Virus record (IMG/VR): IMGVR_UViG_3300032053_000002
Span: 62,001-126,000 of that record
Strand: one strand, 5' to 3'
DNA: 64,000 nt
Each line of letters starts with the position of its first letter. Position 1 is the first letter of the stretch. The notes beneath the pieces are model-generated. The model saw nothing but the letters and a program-made list of their open reading frames with translations, did not search any database and was not told where the DNA came from. Positions 1,331 to 48,858 of the stretch are shown piece by piece. A program made the translations under genes and the position numbers.

Positions 1331-3019
1331 TTAGAATTTATCACTAATGAAATCGGACATTATTGTTGGAACGTTTGTATCGAAGCCAACTACATCGAGT
1401 GCGGAAGTATCCATCGGATCCGCTATCGTAAATTCGGTGCTCGTCATTCCGACAACAATAAGTTTCACGTCATGCCCAACTTGGTCTCTGTATTGTTTCA
1501 TTGCTTGAGTTGGATGAATTTTACCTGCCCAAGTTTCGCAATCCGTATAAATAACAATCGCGTCAAAATCCTTTTTGTTATTTTTCGCCCAAATTGCTGG
1601 CAATGCGCAATCAGTTGCTCCAAACGGTAATCCGTTAGTATAATCCGTTATTTCGTTCAAAGACATTCCTGAGTGAACCTTTAACTCGGCGACGTTTGAT
1701 TGCCCAGATAACCAATCTCCTCCAGTGAATCCGATAATAGCGTGATTCTTTTCAGTTCTCATCGTTACCAATGCGAGAGCCGCAGACGCTTCTCTCGGAG
1801 AAAGGTTTAGAATGTTAGCAACACCACCATTAGACATTGAACCGGATACGTCAAGAGCTAACAATATTCTTTTCCCGGTCGGTTCAACATATTTGAACGC
1901 TAAATAAAACGCATCGTTCAGCGCTTTAACAATTTGCGGAACAACATTCCATTGACCAGACCCGCGCATACCGTGACCAGATTCGTAAGTTTTCAGCGCC
2001 ATCAAAATCGCAACAGGATGGATTCTTGCCTTACGCAAATTATCTTCGTTGGTGATTTTATCCACGACAAAGTTTATTTCAGTGAAGTTTCCAGATTCCA
2101 AAATACCGTGTTTGGATAAGTTACCCAGATTACGAATAAGAGCCGTCATGGGAGTTTTTGGCAACAGAGTTTCCCAGACTTTCTTTCCCATGAATTGAGT
2201 CGGAATTGCTTCTCTCGGAATGTTGTATTGGTTTATTAATGCAACGATTTCGTCTTCAGTTGTCGCCTTTTTCGCTAACTCGAATGCGTAAATTAAAGGA
2301 ATATCTTTCACGTCTTCAATGGTATGCGGAAAAGTTTTTTCAGTGCTCTTATCTTTCATCAGTCTTTCGCCACCAACTCCGTGCGTCATCCACGCGAATG
2401 CGAGATTGAATATCCCATCCGTCGCTTGAGCGTGAGACAATCTCAATAAGTCTCGGTGAGACCATCCATCGCGAGATTGATATTTAACGGCCTGGAGTGC
2501 TAAAGAATCGATATTCTTTTCAGTATACCATTTAGCAACTCCATTTCTTAAACCGCGGCCCCACCCACGAAATCCGTTCACGTATTCGGCGAAATGAAAT
2601 AGATGAGTTCCGATTCTGGCGACTTTTGTAAGATTTTCTAATGCATATTTTTTCGCCACGTCGCTACCAAATCCGACTACCATCGCTAGCGCGAACAATG
2701 CCGGGTCGTTGTTTGGAGCACGCCCACTTTCAGACACTTCTACGATTCTATCGACTAATTTTTTCGCCGTGTCTTGCGTTTTACAGTTGTCGATAAGAGT
2801 TTTAATGTTATCCGCATTTTTTACCGTTAACTCTTTCGCGGTTGCGTAATAAGTTGGCTGATCGCTTCCCAGAATTAAAAAGCGATCAAGGACTTTCCAT
2901 TCATCCAATTTGAAAACCACGCCTCCGGCATAGTTTTTAGCCATGTCTTTCTCACGACCTGGAATTACCTGTCGTTGAGAAGTTTTTTTAGTGTTGTAAT
3001 GTTTTTGGTAAGTTTGCAT
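1331..3019 (-). CDS. rsr: Ro60/Rsr TROVE-domain RNA-binding protein (TROVE + vWA)
   Basis: FLILGSD..TYY, RIGTHLFHF, KYQSRDGWSHRDLLRLSH, MTALIRNLG, ALDVSGSM and TDCETW (MIDAS) motifs; 562 aa. Confidence 0.96.
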   Translation of the reverse strand: MQTYQKHYNTKKTSQRQVIPGREKDMAKNYAGGVVFKLDEWKVLDRFLILGSDQPTYYATAKELTVKNADNIKTLIDNCKTQDTAKKLVDRIVEVSESGRAPNNDPALFALAMVVGFGSDVAKKYALENLTKVARIGTHLFHFAEYVNGFRGWGRGLRNGVAKWYTEKNIDSLALQAVKYQSRDGWSHRDLLRLSHAQATDGIFNLAFAWMTHGVGGERLMKDKSTEKTFPHTIEDVKDIPLIYAFELAKKATTEDEIVALINQYNIPREAIPTQFMGKKVWETLLPKTPMTALIRNLGNLSKHGILESGNFTEINFVVDKITNEDNLRKARIHPVAILMALKTYESGHGMRGSGQWNVVPQIVKALNDAFYLAFKYVEPTGKRILLALDVSGSMSNGGVANILNLSPREASAALALVTMRTEKNHAIIGFTGGDWLSGQSNVAELKVHSGMSLNEITDYTNGLPFGATDCALPAIWAKNNKKDFDAIVIYTDCETWAGKIHPTQAMKQYRDQVGHDVKLIVVGMTSTEFTIADPMDTSALDVVGFDTNVPTIMSDFISDKF

Positions 3020-4209: not shown

Positions 4210-4219
4210 CACGTTCCAG

Positions 4220-4293
4220 TTGCGGGAGCAAGAATCGAACTTGCGTTTGTACGGCTTATGAGACCGTGCTGGCACCACTCCAGTCATCCCACA
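4220..4293 (-). tRNA. tRNA-Met (CAT)
   Basis: Cloverleaf; ACGGT CT CAT AA GCCGT. Confidence 0.9.
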
Positions 4294-4990: not shown

Positions 4991-5114
4991 TAGCGACTGT
5001 GACTCTATGGGTACTCTTAGTTAAGCATTCCAGCTTAAGGTAAGGAGTTCTATACAGTAAGCCATAGTCTATCTGTATCGATCATATTCCCTACGTATGC
5101 ACGAGTAGTCGCCA
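4991..5114 (-). ncRNA. Unidentified structured RNA
   Basis: TGGCGACT/AGTCGCTA closing stem, AT-rich flanks. Confidence 0.4.
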
Positions 5115-5122
5115 AATAAAAC

Positions 5123-5368
5123 TTTTAGGATAAGGAGCGACCAGGATGGGAATTACTTTTTTTCCCGTGTTTCAAGCCACGTTTTTATTTACATTGTTTT
5201 CTCAATGAGAACTTTTACGAAATCCTAAAACGGGAAATTTTTACGTGTTTCAAGCACGGAACAATTACTCACTACTTATTTTGTTTGAAGTGAATGGTTA
5301 GACGCTCAACCCTAACCTTTTTTCCTAATTACAAGTATTATGATAACCCTGCATCATCGACCCTAAAA
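5123..5368 (-). ncRNA. Long Y-like RNA, copy E (246 nt)
   Basis: TTTTAGGGT-C-GA / TT-ATCCTAAAA; CAGGGT/ATCCTG; GGGTTATC; two CGTG-(G)CTTGAAA-CACG hairpins. Confidence 0.65.
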
Positions 5369-5373
5369 ATTAT

Positions 5374-5450
5374 TGAGAGATCCCACAGGTCGGCATTTCT
5401 GCGTTTGGTACTTTAATAGCGCCACGATTTACTGTGGATTTACTCTCTCA
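5374..5450 (-). ncRNA. Unidentified structured RNA
   Basis: GAGAGA..ATCCACAG / CTGTGGGATCTCTC stem enclosing a GCA-GAAA-TGC hairpin; follows a boxA-like motif. Confidence 0.5.
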
Positions 5451-5622
5451 TACTTCAAAGAACAAAATGCAAGATTCGCGAAAGGAAATGATTCACGCCC
5501 AGAGATTCGCGAATCGAGAGCCCATTCTACGCATGGTAGACGGGACGAATATAAATATATGTATTTTTTATAAACATACTTATTATACAACCATTAAAAT
5601 AAAAAGTTCCATTTTTTTCATT

Positions 5623-5946
5623 TTATTTTTCATTTATTGACGATGTATATTTTATAAGTTCAGCAAAAAATTTTACGTATTCTTCTAATATCTTCGGATT
5701 AATAAATTCATTTTTTTCATAACTATTTTCCAACTTAACAAATTCATTTTTCGCTCTTAGAAAATTCTCCCTCTTCCACGCAAACTCTTCAGCATATCTT
5801 TCGTCTAGAAAAAACGGCTCTTTGTTGAATATTTCTTCTAATTCGACAATAGAATTTTTTATAAACATCATTATGTCAAGCCAGTTCATAACAGATTCTA
5901 TTGTCGCCTTTGAATGTTCCACTTTTTTAATTTCCTTTTTCTTCAT
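5623..5946 (-). CDS. Hypothetical protein
   Basis: 107-aa ORF below a TTGACT-type promoter. Confidence 0.6.
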   Translation of the reverse strand: MKKKEIKKVEHSKATIESVMNWLDIMMFIKNSIVELEEIFNKEPFFLDERYAEEFAWKRENFLRAKNEFVKLENSYEKNEFINPKILEEYVKFFAELIKYTSSINEK

Positions 5947-6209
5947 ATTATAAATATAAGAAAAAAATCGCGAACAGTCAAGTAAATTATTTTATATCTT
6001 CAAACTGAACATCAACCATTTCTTCGCAGAAGAAAAGGGTGCCATCCTTTTTAAGAACCAAATCAGAATTACTATACCACTTAAACCATTCTAATCTATT
6101 CGCAGAGACACCCTCGTCTTTTACTTTTAATTTAACTACGCATTTTTTATCTTGAAAGTTTATAATTTCCATTGTTTTAATAAAAGAAGGCGGCGCAATT
6201 GCGTCCACT

Positions 6210-6629
6210 TTACTTAACTTCGATCTTTTTAAATTTAGTTTGCTCCGTTTTCGGCAAATCTATTGTTAGAATTCCGTTCTCGTACTTCGCATTGATATTT
6301 TCCGAATCAAAAGTGTTCCCGATATATTGCTGGCGAGAAAATGAGCGAGAACCGACTTCTCGATAAATATAACGAGAATTCTTTTCTTCTTTTCCGGCCT
6401 TTTCTTCGCCAGAAATTGAAAGCCATCCATTTTCAAACTTTATATCGAGGTCTTCTTTTTTGAATCCCGGAATATCCAACGACACTTCTATTTTGTCGTC
6501 AAACTCTTTCATATCCATTTTCGGGCCTTTAAAAAGAGCGGGTTTTAAAAAATCACTCAGTACGTCATCAAATTCCTCAAACAAAGATGGCAAGTTACGA
6601 TTAAAATATCTAGTTAAAGATGTGTTCAT
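6210..6629 (-). CDS. hsp20: Small heat-shock protein (Hsp20/alpha-crystallin)
   Basis: DIPGFKKEDLDI, SFSRQ, AKYENGILTIDLPK. Confidence 0.95.
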   Translation of the reverse strand: MNTSLTRYFNRNLPSLFEEFDDVLSDFLKPALFKGPKMDMKEFDDKIEVSLDIPGFKKEDLDIKFENGWLSISGEEKAGKEEKNSRYIYREVGSRSFSRQQYIGNTFDSENINAKYENGILTIDLPKTEQTKFKKIEVK

Positions 6630-33691: not shown

Positions 33692-34111
33692 CTATTTAAA
33701 AATTTCTTTATGAATACAAACTACATTATTTTCGTTTGTTTTTTCATCATATTGACTAACATATACGCTATATGATTGATATTCTATTCTTATACTCATA
33801 ACCGCGTCGCGAATCATATGACTCTTAATTATTTTAGTAAACCAATCCACCAATTCCTGTTCATTATCATAATCTCTTAGGTCGCCCCAGAAATTTACAG
33901 TATACGCTGCAAGATGATGATCTTCCGGATTTTCCCATATATTTACTTGAATAGACCCTTCGCTACCACATGGAACATTGCATTCTTTCCACTCTATTTC
34001 GTCATCAGTAAAACCACAAGTCTTAAATTTTGAATTCAAATCCGTATAATCACTCATTACTTTCAAATGATCAATTCTTATTGAACCATTAACATGCGTC
34101 CATTGACTCAT
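33692..34111 (-). CDS. Hypothetical phage protein
   Basis: MSQWTHVNGSIRID, PCGSEGS. Confidence 0.7.
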   Translation of the reverse strand: MSQWTHVNGSIRIDHLKVMSDYTDLNSKFKTCGFTDDEIEWKECNVPCGSEGSIQVNIWENPEDHHLAAYTVNFWGDLRDYDNEQELVDWFTKIIKSHMIRDAVMSIRIEYQSYSVYVSQYDEKTNENNVVCIHKEIFK

Positions 34112-35115
34112 ATTATTACCACCTTATTAAATTCGTTGTATAAAGACCGTTTACCCTTTTCAAACAATTTGTATTTTTTGCGAACAACTCCATCAGGAAC
34201 ATTGGAACGGTCTATACCTTTTTCAATGTCGTCTTTGATACGTCTAATAGCAACTTCAGGGTCTACTTCAAACACAACCGCTATTTTTCTGCAATCATTA
34301 AAATCAGACATAAATTCTATTCTTAACCACTTATCAACACTGGTCGCGTCTAAATAGGTTTTTCCGTATTTTAGCAAATCAACTTTCATTCGCACTTTAG
34401 TCTCTTCCCAAACGTCATCGTTTGCGGCTTGATTGGAAATATTGCCAGTAAACTCACGGCGAATTTCATCCGGGCAAACAATATATTTTTTATCTATGTT
34501 TTTCAAATAACGAGATTTTCCAGATCCTGGAATACCAACCATAACATAAACTTTTTTACTGGAATGTCGTTGTTTAAAATGAACAAACATTTCTTTAATT
34601 TTATTTTTCTTCAAATCGAAATTGGTAGCAAAAGTCGCCCACGCCGCTCTAGATTGTCCTTTATCCATCTGAACAAATCGTCTTAAATCTTCATCTTGAA
34701 TTTTATCATAATCAGAAACATTTTTTATAGAGTGATTCATATGTTCTGCAATTACTTTTACGGTAACATCATAATACTTAATATAATCTTTGTATTCTTC
34801 AATAAATTCTACAGACTTTTTCGCGTGACCGTACGAATAAATCTTTTTTTCGCCAACGGTGGTTTTCCACGCTTTTCCGACATCATGTAAAAAAGCCGCT
34901 TCGATTAGGTTATCGTACCCAAACATTTTAGTTACGTAAACCATATTAAAGGTATGCAACAGTGCATCAAACTCAGGATGATAATAGGTGGATTGCGGAA
35001 TACCATCCAACGCATTCACAACTTTGGAAGTTATGAAGTATTGGCGCATTTCGTATTTCCACGCATCAAAATCAGAGTAATTTGCGTTGTATAGTATGTC
35101 GTAAAAAGTTTTCAT
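34108..35115 (-). CDS. HD-Pnk RNA end-healing enzyme (HD phosphoesterase + polynucleotide kinase)
   Basis: HT..V, AAFLHDVGK (HD); GIPGSGKS P-loop, CPDEIR, LDATS. Confidence 0.85.
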   Translation of the reverse strand: MKTFYDILYNANYSDFDAWKYEMRQYFITSKVVNALDGIPQSTYYHPEFDALLHTFNMVYVTKMFGYDNLIEAAFLHDVGKAWKTTVGEKKIYSYGHAKKSVEFIEEYKDYIKYYDVTVKVIAEHMNHSIKNVSDYDKIQDEDLRRFVQMDKGQSRAAWATFATNFDLKKNKIKEMFVHFKQRHSSKKVYVMVGIPGSGKSRYLKNIDKKYIVCPDEIRREFTGNISNQAANDDVWEETKVRMKVDLLKYGKTYLDATSVDKWLRIEFMSDFNDCRKIAVVFEVDPEVAIRRIKDDIEKGIDRSNVPDGVVRKKYKLFEKGKRSLYNEFNKVVII

Positions 35116-36017: not shown

Positions 36018-37193
36018 CTATTTTTTCATCAATAAAAACTTAACCTTTTTAGAACCCATCTCACCAAGAACCGACTTCGGGTCTAATTCAAAGTTATCTA
36101 CCATTCTAAAAATTATTCCGGTTAAAGATTTATTAACATTTTCTAAAACCGCGAATGCTAACTCTTTACGAGACATGGTTTTGGACATTCCTCGGTAAAT
36201 CTCTCCTTCTTTCAATAAATAGTCAACCAAATTAGAATATTTTTCCTTTAATGATTTATATTCTTCGCGGACTTTGTCAGGAAGTTTATTTAAGTATACC
36301 TCAAATTCTTTCATTTCATTATTCATTAAAACATTTATTAAATTATTAGTTATTCCTTCGCCAGTTGCGACATGATGTAACTGAATGTATTTCGGAGATT
36401 TAATTTTAACTCTTCCGATAACTTCATCTTCTTCAAACTGAGATACAACAAATCCTTCAAAGTCGTTCCCGTTCAGATTTTCTTTATCTGCAATATTAGA
36501 CAATTCCATTATATCATTTACGTCTTTTAAATCGAAAAGTTTAGGAAATCTAATAGGCAAGCCATTAAAAACACTTTCCATCTTTTTTCGAATAGATTTA
36601 TAGAATATGTTGAAATCTTTAGAAGTTTCATTTTCTTTTAATCCAATAAATACCAATTCTTTTTTAGAATAATCAACAACTATTCGAGCCGACGAGTGAA
36701 CCAACTCAAACATATAAGTTTTGTCTTGCTCAAATTGAGAAGTTAAGATATTAAAATCTTCTCTGGAAATAATATCAAAAAATAACTCTTCAAATGGAAT
36801 TTTATCAGTAGTAGTCGCGTCTTTAGCATCAATAGTTCCATTGGTTGCAATTCGCCATTTTTCATCATAAAAATAAACTTTAATAATTGAACCATCCACT
36901 TTTTCTATAATATAGGATTTTTCTAAATCTATGTTAAATGCATGAGATTCTCCGTAATTCCAGAATTTGAAAAATGGATTACATACTATTTTCCAGGTAC
37001 CATTTTCTAAAATTATTCCGCGAGATTCGCGAACGATTGAATTGGAAAAATCAGAATTAAATTGATTATATTTAAATAAAACAAGATTGTTTTTTGCAGA
37101 AATAATAAGATTAAAGGGGTCTTTTTTTAAGTCCTCTATGGCTCTATTTTCCAAGAATTTTTGTAGAGATAACATTGTAATATTTTCTTTCAT
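36018..37193 (-). CDS. T4 Rnl1-type RNA ligase
   Basis: RESRG, KFWNYGE, EKVDGS (motif I), FELV, EGFVV, KIKSPKY. Confidence 0.93.
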   Translation of the reverse strand: MKENITMLSLQKFLENRAIEDLKKDPFNLIISAKNNLVLFKYNQFNSDFSNSIVRESRGIILENGTWKIVCNPFFKFWNYGESHAFNIDLEKSYIIEKVDGSIIKVYFYDEKWRIATNGTIDAKDATTTDKIPFEELFFDIISREDFNILTSQFEQDKTYMFELVHSSARIVVDYSKKELVFIGLKENETSKDFNIFYKSIRKKMESVFNGLPIRFPKLFDLKDVNDIMELSNIADKENLNGNDFEGFVVSQFEEDEVIGRVKIKSPKYIQLHHVATGEGITNNLINVLMNNEMKEFEVYLNKLPDKVREEYKSLKEKYSNLVDYLLKEGEIYRGMSKTMSRKELAFAVLENVNKSLTGIIFRMVDNFELDPKSVLGEMGSKKVKFLLMKK

Positions 37194-45131: not shown

Positions 45132-46200
45132 CTCAAACGTATATCGTCTCGGATTTTGTTTTAAATAAGTAAATTGTATTTTAATGGCGTTTACGATTTT
45201 TAATTACCTCGTAAATAAGACAAATTGCGACGACACATAAAATAATTAATATTACCATTTTAATCCCACCACTTCTTAAAGTGTTTTAATTGGTTAAACA
45301 ATAATTCAGTATCCTGCGCTTCATGATCATCCAACCATTTAAAAGCTTTTTCGCGATTTACCGATAATAAAACTTTATATTGTTTTGAAGATGCATAGTT
45401 ATCTTTTATTATTCGGCCTATCAGATTTTTGCACGTTTTCATGCGGCGAGTTTCTCTTTCCGTTCCCACAAAAGTGTCCGCCTTTTCGTGATATGACTCC
45501 ATCAGCGACAACTTCTTTTTTAGAATGACCATTAAAAAATACCAATCCCAATCCCGGTCGTTCCACATTATTTCAATCCAAATAAGTAAATTTTTTATTC
45601 CATACCAAAAATCTCGAGGCGCGTTTATCATAAAAAATCGTGCTCGATTCCACCGACATGAAATGCTTTCCAAAAAAGTGTATCGATGTTGTTTTAATGA
45701 GAAAATCATTTCATCTACCGAATCAAACGTTAAATATTCATCTTTTTTCATTTTAAACCTTATCTTGTTTAACTTTACTTTCAGATTGTTCCATGGCTCT
45801 TTCTATTTTGGATTTTACTTGCGATAGATATTCCATTAAAACAAGTATGTCCCCATCACTTATTTCAATATAAAAAGGCAATTTTGCCAACCAATCTATT
45901 ATGAATTTCCAATTGGGGCGAAATTCTTGTAACAATTCTTCTTTAGATTTCATTTTATCAACGAATCGATTTCTTTTGCGAATTTGTTTATATCAATAAT
46001 CATTTTTTGCAATTTTTTAGAATACTTTTCCATTCGCTTTCTTATTTTCTTTGGCGTGTCTTCATTTGAAAATAAAAATTTAATACGAGTTACCGCATTT
46101 GAAATTTCTCCACCAACTTTTTTAATTTGTTCGGCGAGTAAAATGTTGCCACTACTTACTGACATCTATATTTCTCCCATTTTTTATCAAATATAAATAG

Positions 46201-46458
46201 ATTAAAAGATTGCTTCTATAACCAGGATTCTGTATGGTATTTCTACCACGGTAATCATTTCTCTACCGGCGTTCTACCCGACCGTAAGTCCCGCTTACAA
46301 ACCGGTCTGCTCGAACTTGCACGAAATCGTTCATTCGTTTCGCGTGGTACCGCGATATACTATAAAACTATCTCCCACACCAAGCGGCCCGTGTCCTGAG
46401 TTTCCTCTCGCGCCACTTATCGTGGTCTGCGAGCGATTACCCGAAACAATCTTTTAAT
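46201..46458 (-). ncRNA. rnpB: RNase P RNA (compact)
   Basis: P1 AAAAGATTGTTTC/GAAGCAATCTTTT; P2 GGTAATCG/TGATTACC; P3; GAGGAAACTCAGGA pairs with ACAGAATCCTGGTTAT (P4 with bulged U); P15 with GGGTA loop; P19 TGGTA-GAAA-TACCA. Confidence 0.92.
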
Positions 46459-46627
46459 CAAAGAACGAATTTTTGAATCTGATTCCTTGTGAGAACTACG
46501 AGTAAAGTTATATACTGTGTAATCTTTATTTCCGGTGATATAATCTTCTGGATTAAAACTTTTTGTATTCATTTTATTAAACCTTTTTATTTTAACTAGT
46601 TAAATATACAAAATTTTATGATGTTTG

Positions 46628-47113
46628 TCAAGTATTATTATATCTTTCCGTATTTTTATTATAAAAATTTATAATCGTATCATAAATTAACGTATTATAA
46701 AATCTTTTATCATACAACGATTCCACATATTTATCCGAATCTTCGCCGTTAAGTATTTTGGATACGGCTAATGCAACCGCAACCGATCTAGACATTCCGG
46801 CTTCGCAATTTATTAAAATATCGTTTACGTCATGTTTATATCTAAGAACGAAATCTACAATACGTTTAGCAAGAAATTCCGAAAAATGAATAAGATCATT
46901 CATGTCTACTCGATAAAATGAATTAACGTCACCGTCATAATTTATATCATGAAATTCCAGATACAAAACATCTTTACAAAAAGAAGTCTCAGGCAACCTA
47001 TAAAATGGAGCTCCCGGAGAAAATATGGAAATGGCGACGAACGGAATTTTAATTCCATCGATAAATACCTTATCGGTAGCCATACGTTTATTTATCGCAA
47101 CTATTTTATACAT
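46628..47113 (-). CDS. Cys-based protein tyrosine/dual-specificity phosphatase
   Basis: NCEAGMSRS (Cx5R); FHD acid loop. Confidence 0.88.
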   Translation of the reverse strand: MYKIVAINKRMATDKVFIDGIKIPFVAISIFSPGAPFYRLPETSFCKDVLYLEFHDINYDGDVNSFYRVDMNDLIHFSEFLAKRIVDFVLRYKHDVNDILINCEAGMSRSVAVALAVSKILNGEDSDKYVESLYDKRFYNTLIYDTIINFYNKNTERYNNT

Positions 47114-48513: not shown

Positions 48514-48772
48514 AATACTATTTTTCTTTATCTTCTTTTCTTTTATTAAGGAATATTTTATTTATCAACGTCCATGCACTTAATCCAATAGAAATTAAAA
48601 CTCCTAATTCCTTAACTACATCTAATAAATAATAAATGTTTAATTTTTGAAGTATGTATGTTAATAAAAACGCTCCCGCTGCCGCAGAAACTAAAAATTC
48701 TGTTACCGCGTGCCACATCCGTGACTTCCAAAACTTACCTGTTATGTTTTTCATAACATAAACTCCAATTAG

Positions 48773-48858
48773 CGGAGAGTATAGGATTTGAACCTATGTG
48801 CCCAAAGGGCAACCTCGGTTTAGCAAACCGGTACAATACCTGACTCTGCCAACTCTCC
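48773..48858 (-). tRNA. tRNA-Ser (GCT)
   Basis: CGGT TT GCT AA ACCG. Confidence 0.93.

Follow-up and report, generated by a model that had tools for sequence, protein, structure and literature searches.

Ribonuclease P (RNase P) is the enzyme that removes the 5′ leaders of pre-tRNAs. As far as we know it is regarded as universal, essential and cell-encoded, and phages are assumed to depend on the RNase P of their host for the 5′ ends of their tRNAs. Here we consider an RNA of about 260 nt, encoded in a stretch of viral DNA, for which the evidence supports an identification as a phage-encoded minimal RNase P RNA. The stretch, in what follows called the window, comprises 64,000 nt (positions 62,001-126,000) of the IMG/VR contig UViG_3300032053_000002 (Ga0315284_10000017; 292,723 bp). 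The identification, first proposed in a sequence-only reading of the window, is upheld by a match over the full length of the bacterial class A model, by catalytic helices that covary in viral relatives, and by the phage context of the gene. No description of a phage-encoded RNase P RNA was found in the full-text literature searched, and one in journals outside that coverage is possible.

Among the systems described so far, the closest is the type A RNA of bacteria (Escherichia coli M1 RNA; RF00010), with which the window RNA shares helices P1-P5, the P4 and P6 pseudoknots, the P15-P17 arm with its GGU loop, and the conserved regions CR-I, CR-IV and CR-V. Type A RNAs are 350-400 nt long, whereas the window RNA has about 260 nt, lacks P18, P8-P14 and CR-II/CR-III, has one P4 pair flipped to C-G, and is encoded by a phage. 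Type T of the Thermoproteaceae (Pyrobaculum; RF02357) is a natural RNase P RNA that, with about 200 nt and its specificity (S) domain almost wholly lost, is reportedly still active. It has an archaeal catalytic (C) domain and several protein partners, and it is the only RNase P of its cell. Type T is a precedent for a working design without an S domain, but the phage RNA descends from bacterial type A and comes in addition to the RNA of the host, instead of being the sole cellular one. In bacterial RNase P RNA, the C domain alone is catalytically competent when protein is present. The same autonomy of the C domain is seen in engineered deletion or C-domain-only ribozymes ('Micro P') and in bimolecular S+C constructs, of which the phage RNAs look like natural versions, with the difference that they retain P7 and its cap and have a longer P6 (6-8 bp). 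The bimolecular S+C designs are discussed in PMC6783828.

Extra RNase P RNA homologues with altered S domains, probably horizontally acquired, have been noted in Mycobacterium austroafricanum and M. sp. YC-RL4 (PMC9569102). These are likewise additional copies with differences in the S domain, in a genus with phage-linked large tRNA clusters, but they are chromosomal, were mentioned briefly and not analysed as a family, and neither phage origin nor miniaturisation nor linkage to tRNA arrays was shown for them. Theta ribozymes, which are minimal ribozymes like that of hepatitis delta virus (HDV), adjoin phage tRNA genes and have been proposed to serve host-independent tRNA maturation, and the same paper assigns the 5′ ends of phage tRNAs to host RNase P (PMC10879173). 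Theta ribozymes thus also occur in phage tRNA regions, but they are small, cleave in cis and act at tRNA 3′ ends, whereas the phage RNase P RNA would be a ribozyme acting in trans on 5′ ends. Camelpox virus, finally, encodes an RNase P-like RNA that is inactive in vitro (PMC3001073). The camelpox RNA has a loose structural similarity only, in contrast to the statistically strong model match and the covarying core of the phage RNA.

When the window is scanned with Rfam at gathering thresholds, tRNAs are the only matches and no RNase P RNA is reported. The RNase P model match that the sequence-only reading led one to expect is missing at this threshold, but appears in a permissive scan of positions 46000-46700, where RF00010 (bacterial RNase P class A) matches the minus strand from 46452 to 46203 with 66.1 bits and an E value of 7.6e-20, spanning model positions 1-367, i.e., the full model. 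The catalytic domain aligns to the model block by block: GAGGAAA-CUCAGGAC, GCAAG, P15-P17 with CGGGUAGAAC, and then GUAGAGAAAUG and ACAGAAUCCUGGUUA. The specificity domain appears as unaligned local ends of 18+17+31 nt where the model has 15+15+110, and the P18 segment of the model (23 positions) is reduced to one nucleotide. From these two features follows the low score, and since the score falls below the gathering threshold, routine annotation misses the RNA. Within the RNase P clan (CL00002), where lower-scoring members are suppressed, bacterial class A is the top-scoring family. Type T is not the best match in the clan, and the catalytic domain is not of the archaeal type.

The RNA shares the minus strand with all 44 tRNA genes that ARAGORN reports and with practically every credible open reading frame (ORF) of the window. 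It forms a GC-rich island (43-53% GC versus 15-30% in the flanks) in the intergenic gap between the ORF of a DUSP-like phosphatase and a small ORF starting at 46165. The minus strand folds with -94.5 kcal/mol (z -5.76), a value equalled by none of 200 shuffled sequences. A reading on the plus strand was dropped, as its folding is weaker (z -4.15 versus -5.76) and the model match is to the minus strand. Two ORFs that overlap the RNA, 46317-46457 on the plus and 46417-46572 on the minus strand, were judged spurious, being short and without Pfam match; the latter, with 51 codons, begins downstream of a promoter-like site and enters the 5′ end of the RNA by 36 nt, and is probably spurious even though it would be placed in the leader of the RNA's transcript. 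No terminator-like site was seen downstream of the RNA.

The coordinates of all elements are collected in Table 1, where nucleotide 1 of the RNA corresponds to position 46452 and nucleotide n to position 46453 - n. Folding with the pseudoknot strands held open recovers P1, P2, P3, P15, P16 and P19, and the RF00010 alignment and constrained folding together account for every helix that the sequence-only reading had named, i.e., P1, P2, P3, P4, P15 and P19. The limits given there, 46201-46458, were off by 1-2 nt at most, since P1 spans G46459 to C46200. P4 is AACUCAGGA/UCCUGGUU, with 8 bp and a bulged U at 46399, and it is compensatory in the sense then proposed: pair 3 is C-G and pair 5 is A-U, as against G-C and C-G in the consensus of bacteria, and the bulged U is retained. 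The P15 loop with a GGU is found as GGGUA (46279-46275). P18 is indeed absent, a model gap of 23 positions becoming one of 1, and the loss has the consequence that CR-IV adjoins P15 directly. The specificity domain is as strongly shortened as had been claimed, consisting of P7 and short hairpins without P8-P14 and CR-II/CR-III, and the distance between the P5 strands is 66 nt versus about 140 in the model. How exactly this stub folds in the window copy is uncertain, since the minimum free energy structure is a different one. The P6 duplex CCGC(UUG)/(UAA)GCGG has an energy of -10.7 kcal/mol. What did not survive is the boxA-like motif said to precede the RNA: no match to the boxA 13-mer with up to three mismatches occurs near it (46460-46520), the 37 such matches in the whole window are at chance level (33 ± 6 expected), and the string that had been taken for boxA is mostly the 5′ strand of the extended P1.

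Some features are private to the window copy, namely the long P3, the canonical-looking P16/P17, P19 and the extra hairpin between P7 and P5. For these the support comes from folding, because none of the collections contains a close relative of the window copy. A shuffle test of the P3 hairpin was uninformative (mean z -0.75). P19 is shared by few family members, and at the position of P18 a minority of them carry an insert.

The relatives come from scans of IMG/VR for both P4 strands, first in the form of the window copy and then with the covarying positions left free, in each case with a short spacing between the strands; a first scan with a 15-mer gave mostly chance matches, which were then filtered locally. 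Viral mini RNase P RNAs are defined here by a short P4-to-P4 spacing on a viral contig, and the window copy, with a spacing of 174 nt, belongs to them. The relaxed scans gave 50 instances, corresponding to 46 distinct short copies, most of which reside on contigs of 40-416 kb. Their P4-to-P4 spacing is 131-232 nt versus about 275-300 nt, and their total length is about 190-295 nt, with a median of about 230. A metagenome scan for the variant with flipped P4 added 29 further loci, and a class of mid-size spacing (193-223 nt) added 16 extra viral copies. At full-size spacing there are 52 'viral' matches, about half of which are in tRNA arrays (25 have at least five tRNAs per locus), while the others are host flanks of prophage calls in isolate genomes. 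Phage tRNA regions, in other words, hold RNase P RNAs along a continuum of sizes, with the window copy at its reduced end.

After P5 the short copies share a stub signature, in which a P6 strand GCUU.. is followed by GGUG.GGGAG ... UACCAC; it reads GCUUGGUGUGGGAG ... UACCACG in the window and GCUUAAGGUGGGAG ... UACCACCG in the main group. When RF00010 is applied to relatives, one scores 46 bits, two score 55 and 67 bits, and five give no match at E ≤ 0.001. Most short copies are invisible at the Rfam gathering threshold, which would explain why they are missing from annotation. In a BLAST search, neither the window RNA nor two other members of the family had a match among 50,697 deposited phage genomes, which is weak evidence of absence, as BLAST needs longer conserved blocks than these RNAs offer. 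Two related viral contigs have a transfer-messenger RNA gene only a few kb from their mini RNase P RNA (L022 3493-3838 and L038 11755-12167), so that several stable-RNA genes cluster with tRNA arrays.

Conservation in the family was evaluated in a MAFFT alignment of 40 sequences. Invariant in all 40 are GAGGAAA, U, C and GG of CR-I, AGA and AU of CR-IV (A189, G190, A195 and U196), and ACAGAA, G and UUA of CR-V, while GCAA of J5/15 and the GG of L15 (G175/G176) are conserved to at least 90%. In P4, 309 of 312 alignment cells are paired, the bulged U is present in 39 of 39 sequences, and three pairs switch on both sides: pair 3 is G-C, C-G or U-A, pair 5 is A-U, C-G or G-C, and pair 8 has four forms. 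In P5 the corresponding number is 151 of 156 cells, with AU, UA, CG and GC switches. From the same alignment, RNAalifold predicts P4 and P5 independently, and 10 of 15 pairs show double compensatory changes.

P1, P2, P6 and P7, which are beyond alignment by MAFFT, were evaluated in an alignment-free way, by comparing how strongly each strand pairs with its cognate strand and with the non-cognate strands of other copies. For P1, where the energies refer to the innermost helix only, cognate strands pair with -14.2 and non-cognate strands with -7.6 kcal/mol (p 1e-15). For P2 the energies are -7.8 and -3.9 kcal/mol (p 1e-11), with many fully compensatory variants. P6 has 6-8 bp of wholly different sequence from copy to copy and the pairing is again specific for the cognate strand (p 1.6e-5), as exemplified by UGGAAC/GUUCCA, GCUGCUC/GAGCAGC and GACCAACU/AGUUGGUC. 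P7 covaries as well (p 1.7e-8), taking forms such as GGUGG/CCACC, GGUAG/CUACC, GGAAG/CUUCC and CGAGG/CCUCG. The family architecture is a complete type A catalytic domain together with P7 and a cap.

The same relaxed short-spacing pattern was applied to cellular DNA, i.e., to GTDB contigs with one genome per species, and returned 46 matches. None has the flipped P4 of the window. Most are lineage-specific short rnpB genes without tRNA arrays, including syntenic Elusimicrobia, Patescibacteria groups and a group of gut 'Pseudomonadales' metagenome-assembled genomes (MAGs). The signature of the phage family is found in only two of the 46; one of these, scoring 55 bits, has 11 adjoining tRNAs and is probably a prophage or a mis-binned phage contig. 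Since the cellular short forms differ in these respects, having no flipped P4 and mostly no tRNA arrays, the viral family does not simply reproduce one of the short forms known from cells.

Further observations concern these comparisons. The Rfam consensus and each of the 46 cellular matches have G-C as the third pair of P4, and this pair is altered in many viral copies of all sizes, to U-A in eight viral loci (L276, L288, L305, L317, L295, L323, L334 and L189) and to C-G in L294, L325 and the group of the window; the altered pair looks like a virus-specific relaxation or signature. Cellular rnpB-like genes with a P4-to-P4 spacing of 170-192 nt occur in Elusimicrobia MAGs (L193, L207, L209-L211, L213, L215, L221 and L229), in Shapirobacteria (L203, L216, L232 and L234) and in Dojkabacteria (L194 and L220). 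The copies of the Elusimicrobia are syntenic and have a tRNA-Val at a distance of about 1.2 kb, and those of all three lineages seem to be true short RNase P RNAs of the chromosome, separate from the phage family. The isolate Pseudomonas sp. NPDC096917 has a 249-nt RNase P RNA (L237 1169-1417, plus strand; 187 bits) with the canonical Pseudomonas sequence and an internal deletion, which may represent a second copy, a true deletion or an artefact of the assembly.

The viral family is linked to tRNA genes. In 35 of the 46 distinct short-copy viral loci the RNA has a tRNA gene at a distance of at most 100 nt, and in each of the 41 short-copy loci that carry tRNAs, every tRNA is on the strand of the RNA, with a median of 10 tRNAs per locus of about 10 kb. 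The same linkage is seen for 14 of the 16 mid-size copies and for about half of those with full-size spacing. At several family loci tRNA ends abut P1 directly. The abutting ends suggest that the RNA may be released from a polycistronic tRNA transcript by the very processing events that mature the tRNAs.

We consider it probable, though well short of certain, that the window RNA is a phage catalytic subunit that recruits the RnpA protein of the host and processes phage pre-tRNAs without recognition of the T loop. In such a scheme, a miniaturised type A RNA, which keeps the whole catalytic domain (P1-P5, the P4/P6 pseudoknots, P15 with the CCA-binding loop L15, and CR-I, CR-IV and CR-V) and has lost P18 and nearly all of the T-loop-reading specificity domain, would be transcribed together with the minus-strand gene block, possibly from a promoter of its own. 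It would most likely assemble with host RnpA, and the holoenzyme would cleave the leaders of phage pre-tRNAs, for which there are 44 genes in the window alone, recognising them by their acceptor stem, by their 3′ end and by the base at -1 instead of by the T loop. By these steps the phage would gain its own capacity for tRNA 5′ processing during infection. What the sequences show is homology, a conserved and covarying architecture, membership in a widespread viral family and the physical linkage of this family to tRNA arrays, whereas expression, catalysis, the use of host RnpA and the benefit to the phage are what we infer here. The tRNA genes of the window have U at -1 in 33 of 44 cases and include a tRNA-His with an encoded G(-1), so that their leaders, as judged from sequence, look like those of bacterial RNase P substrates. 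The contact between N(-1) of the leader and A248 of RNase P RNA is described in PMC6582537.

Several observations weigh against this scheme. The RF00010 score of 66.1 bits is below the gathering score of 100. The window copy has no close relative among the deposited phages or in the single metagenome scan, and the flip of its third P4 pair from G-C to C-G, compensatory as it is, occurs in 0 of 46 cellular copies. It does not stand beside a tRNA gene, the nearest being 1.3 kb upstream and 4.2 kb downstream. The full 3′ CCA is encoded in only 5 of the 44 tRNA genes of the window, which means that the GG of L15 could pair with part of the CCA only, unless the CCA is completed first, and that the contact between L15 and CCA may be partial at the time of cleavage. 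The search for rnpA, finally, covers about 82 kb of the 293-kb contig, i.e., the window and its flanks.

Within that scope, PF00825 (RnpA) was found neither among 57 RnpA-sized ORFs of the window (21 Pfam families, complete list) nor among ten neighbours, nor in the precomputed Pfam matches of the two flanking loci. A narrow RnpA profile, built on close Enterobacterales sequences, returned no match in the family loci, although its narrowness leaves this result with little weight. No candidate protein partner is conserved beside the RNA in the family loci. Thus the earlier suggestion that the ribozyme borrows host RnpA is in line with the lack of rnpA in these 82 kb, and although this lack does not turn host RnpA use into an observation, it remains the simplest reading and a reasonable one. 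That the loss of the T-loop-reading module relaxes the choice of substrate is compatible with the structure; that the enzyme accepts non-cloverleaf tRNAs and Y RNAs, as was also proposed, is speculation.

A more far-reaching reading, which is possible but to which we give a clearly smaller chance, is that tRNA-rich phages carry a self-sufficient toolkit for tRNA maturation around an orthogonal RNase P ribozyme of their own, which would mature phage transcripts preferentially or even exclusively. On this tentative reading the enzyme would do without T-loop proof-reading, could work with a phage cofactor other than RnpA or with little help from protein, and would have suppressor and non-canonical tRNAs among its substrates. 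The ends of the RNA itself would, just as tentatively, be cut from the tRNA array by RNase P and tRNA 3′ processing. If it were true, phage translation could continue even after the RNase P or the tRNAs of the host have been shut down or attacked, and the RNAs would make up a natural series of ever smaller RNase P ribozymes, from about 370 to about 190 nt.

Somewhat less likely still is a specialised or orthogonal enzyme, i.e., an active RNA that works with an unrecognised phage protein or with none, or that has a shifted range of substrates; the substrates proposed for it, with the same reserve, are odd phage tRNAs, the suppressor tRNA, Y-RNA-like molecules and polycistronic spacers. The loss of the T-loop-reading S domain speaks for it, as do the amber-suppressor tRNA, the tRNA-like gene with an 8-nt anticodon loop and the Ro60 gene in the window, the Thg1-like gene nearby, and the fact that the ends of family RNAs often abut tRNA ends, so that their own 3′ ends may come from RNase P cleavage. 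Against these points stand the canonical look of the tRNA leaders and the lack of a conserved candidate protein partner beside the RNA.

That the RNA is a sponge or regulator is improbable. In this case a catalytically dead or irrelevant RNA would bind host RnpA or pre-tRNAs, deprive the host holoenzyme of them and shut down tRNA maturation in the host, for which there is a precedent in the inactive camelpox RNase P-like RNA (PMC3001073), and with which the retained protein-binding surface (P3, CR-IV, CR-V and the P15 region) and the lack of rnpA in about 82 kb would agree. However, positions that serve chemistry or substrate binding and that are not needed for protein binding are invariant as well (the bulged U, the J3/4 adenines, L15 GG and J5/15 AA), and with its L15 guanines and J5/15 adenines conserved for substrate binding the RNA has more than a mere protein decoy would need; moreover, the phage makes at least 44 tRNAs that need 5′ processing, and the family is embedded in same-strand tRNA arrays. 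A decaying passenger, be it a functionless piece of host rnpB or cellular DNA that was mis-assembled or mis-binned, is very hard to believe in, for although the score is sub-threshold, the deletions are large and about half of the full-size-spaced 'viral' matches are host flanks of prophage calls, the deletions remove peripheral modules precisely and leave every core helix, at least 46 distinct viral copies keep their pairing by compensatory changes, the flipped P4 variant is in no cellular genome scanned, and the window has 43 PHROG families and the one-strand, tRNA-rich layout of a phage. That the contig is cellular DNA was rejected: it is an IMG/VR contig of 292,723 bp whose window ORFs match 43 PHROG families and which has 44 tRNAs in the window.

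With a widespread viral lineage of RNase P RNAs, a ribozyme for 5′ processing would join the translation-related functions encoded by large phages. The viral RNAs make up a natural deletion series, from nearly full size to about 190 nt, that bears on what a minimal functional RNase P is and on how substrates are recognised without a specificity domain; the lineage would also bear on the arms race over tRNAs, with its anticodon nucleases, tRNA repair and code switching by suppressor tRNAs, and would supply compact RNase P scaffolds for RNA engineering. Of greater importance is the wider pattern, in which phage tRNA arrays regularly include RNase P RNAs.

Table 1. Positions of the RNase P RNA, its structural elements and neighbouring features in window coordinates, except where another frame is named
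Feature	Position	Strand	Basis or remark
Whole mini RNase P RNA, ~260 nt	46200..46459	minus	RF00010 match, P1-extended ends, GC island
P1, 17 bp	46443..46459 / 46200..46216	minus	constrained and free folds
P2, 7-8 bp, GGUAAUC / GAUUACC	46435..46441 / 46250-46256	minus	RF00010 alignment, folding
P3 hairpin, ~10 bp, two bulges	46407..46433	minus	RF00010 alignment, folding
CR-I: GAGGAAA and P4 5′ strand (ACUCAGGA)	46394..46407	minus	bulged U at 46399
P5, CACG / CGUG	46390..46393 / 46320-46323	minus	family P5 pairing
P6 pseudoknot 5′ strand CCGC, extendable to CCGCUUG	46381..46387	minus	pairs with P17 loop and stem 46291-46297
Specificity-domain remnant	46324..46389	minus	P7, capping hairpin and extra hairpin; P8-P14 absent
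P7	46375-46380 / 46342-46347	minus	covaries in family
Capping hairpin	~46354-46372	minus	folding
Extra hairpin between P7 and P5	~46324-46340	minus	folding
J5/15 adenines	46317..46318	minus	counterparts of A248/A249 in E. coli, where they contact the leader base at -1
P15-P16-P17 arm	46271..46316	minus	model P15-P17 alignment; P15 and P16 recovered by folding
L15 internal loop GGGUA	46275-46279	minus	3′-CCA binding site in type A RNAs
CR-IV (AGAGAAAUG), leads into P2 3′ strand	46256..46264	minus	joined directly to P15
P19-like hairpin in J2/4, 6 bp, GAAA tetraloop	46234..46249	minus	few family members share it
CR-V: ACAGAA, P4 3′ strand (UCCUGGUU) and A	46219..46233	minus	RF00010 alignment, family conservation
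Promoter-like site (sigma-70-like) TTGACA-17-TATATT	46603..46631	minus	11/12 consensus matches; ~145 nt upstream of the RNA; consensus match alone
DUSP-like (Rit1-DUSP-like) phosphatase, phrog_5614 of unknown function	46628-47113	minus	directly upstream of the RNA
T4 Rnl1-type RNA ligase	36021-37193	minus	
PNK-like protein	34111-35115	minus	
Ro60 orthologue (TROVE and vWA_Ro60; phrog_850 'RNA-binding protein')	1334-3019	minus	
Thg1-like protein (PF04446)	L337 16913-17683; record ~57.3-58.1 kb		~4 kb outside the window; also put at ~13 kb beyond its low-coordinate end

By its predicted gene content the window is an RNA-metabolism island, a setting in line with a phage catalytic subunit, and also holds methyltransferases, HD proteins and metallophosphoesterase proteins. 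A PNK and an Rnl1-type ligase together are the classic tRNA-repair pair that counters anticodon nucleases, and genes for a PNK-like protein and an Rnl1-type ligase share the island with the tRNAs and the RNase P RNA. The DUSP-like phosphatase might act on RNA ends. The Ro60 orthologue may have phage-encoded Y-RNA-like partners; Rfam at gathering thresholds finds no Y RNA in the window. PF04446 is the family of tRNA-His guanylyltransferases and 3′-5′ polymerases, and if an RNase P without S domain cuts at +1, the Thg1-like protein could put G(-1) back on tRNA-His or mend the 5′ ends of tRNAs. Its gene adjoins those of a NUDIX protein and an SNF2 helicase.

The 44 tRNA genes of the window lie on the minus strand (e.g., 4219-4293 ... 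48772-48858). Four tRNA-Ser genes are situated 1.3-2.4 kb upstream of the RNA, and a tRNA-Leu gene 4.2 kb downstream. The 39 tRNA genes that do not encode the full CCA have exactly one C after the discriminator, in a genome of about 30% GC, and this single C looks non-random. Four tRNA genes on the minus strand are unusual (12629-12702, 19704-19779, 15422-15502 and 16586-16658); unusual forms are a tRNA with the anticodon CUA (an amber suppressor, to which ARAGORN gives the label Pyl), a tRNA-like gene whose anticodon loop has 8 nt (caga), and further a tRNA-Asp(AUC) and a tRNA-Ile(UAU). The minus-strand ORFs are densely packed and without obvious breaks by in-frame stops, despite the tRNA with the CUA anticodon. 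Genes resembling two-component signalling systems are also encoded by the phage, with PAS-domain proteins, a HATPase_c histidine-kinase-like protein and response-regulator receiver domains at L337 ~5093-6262 and elsewhere in the window.

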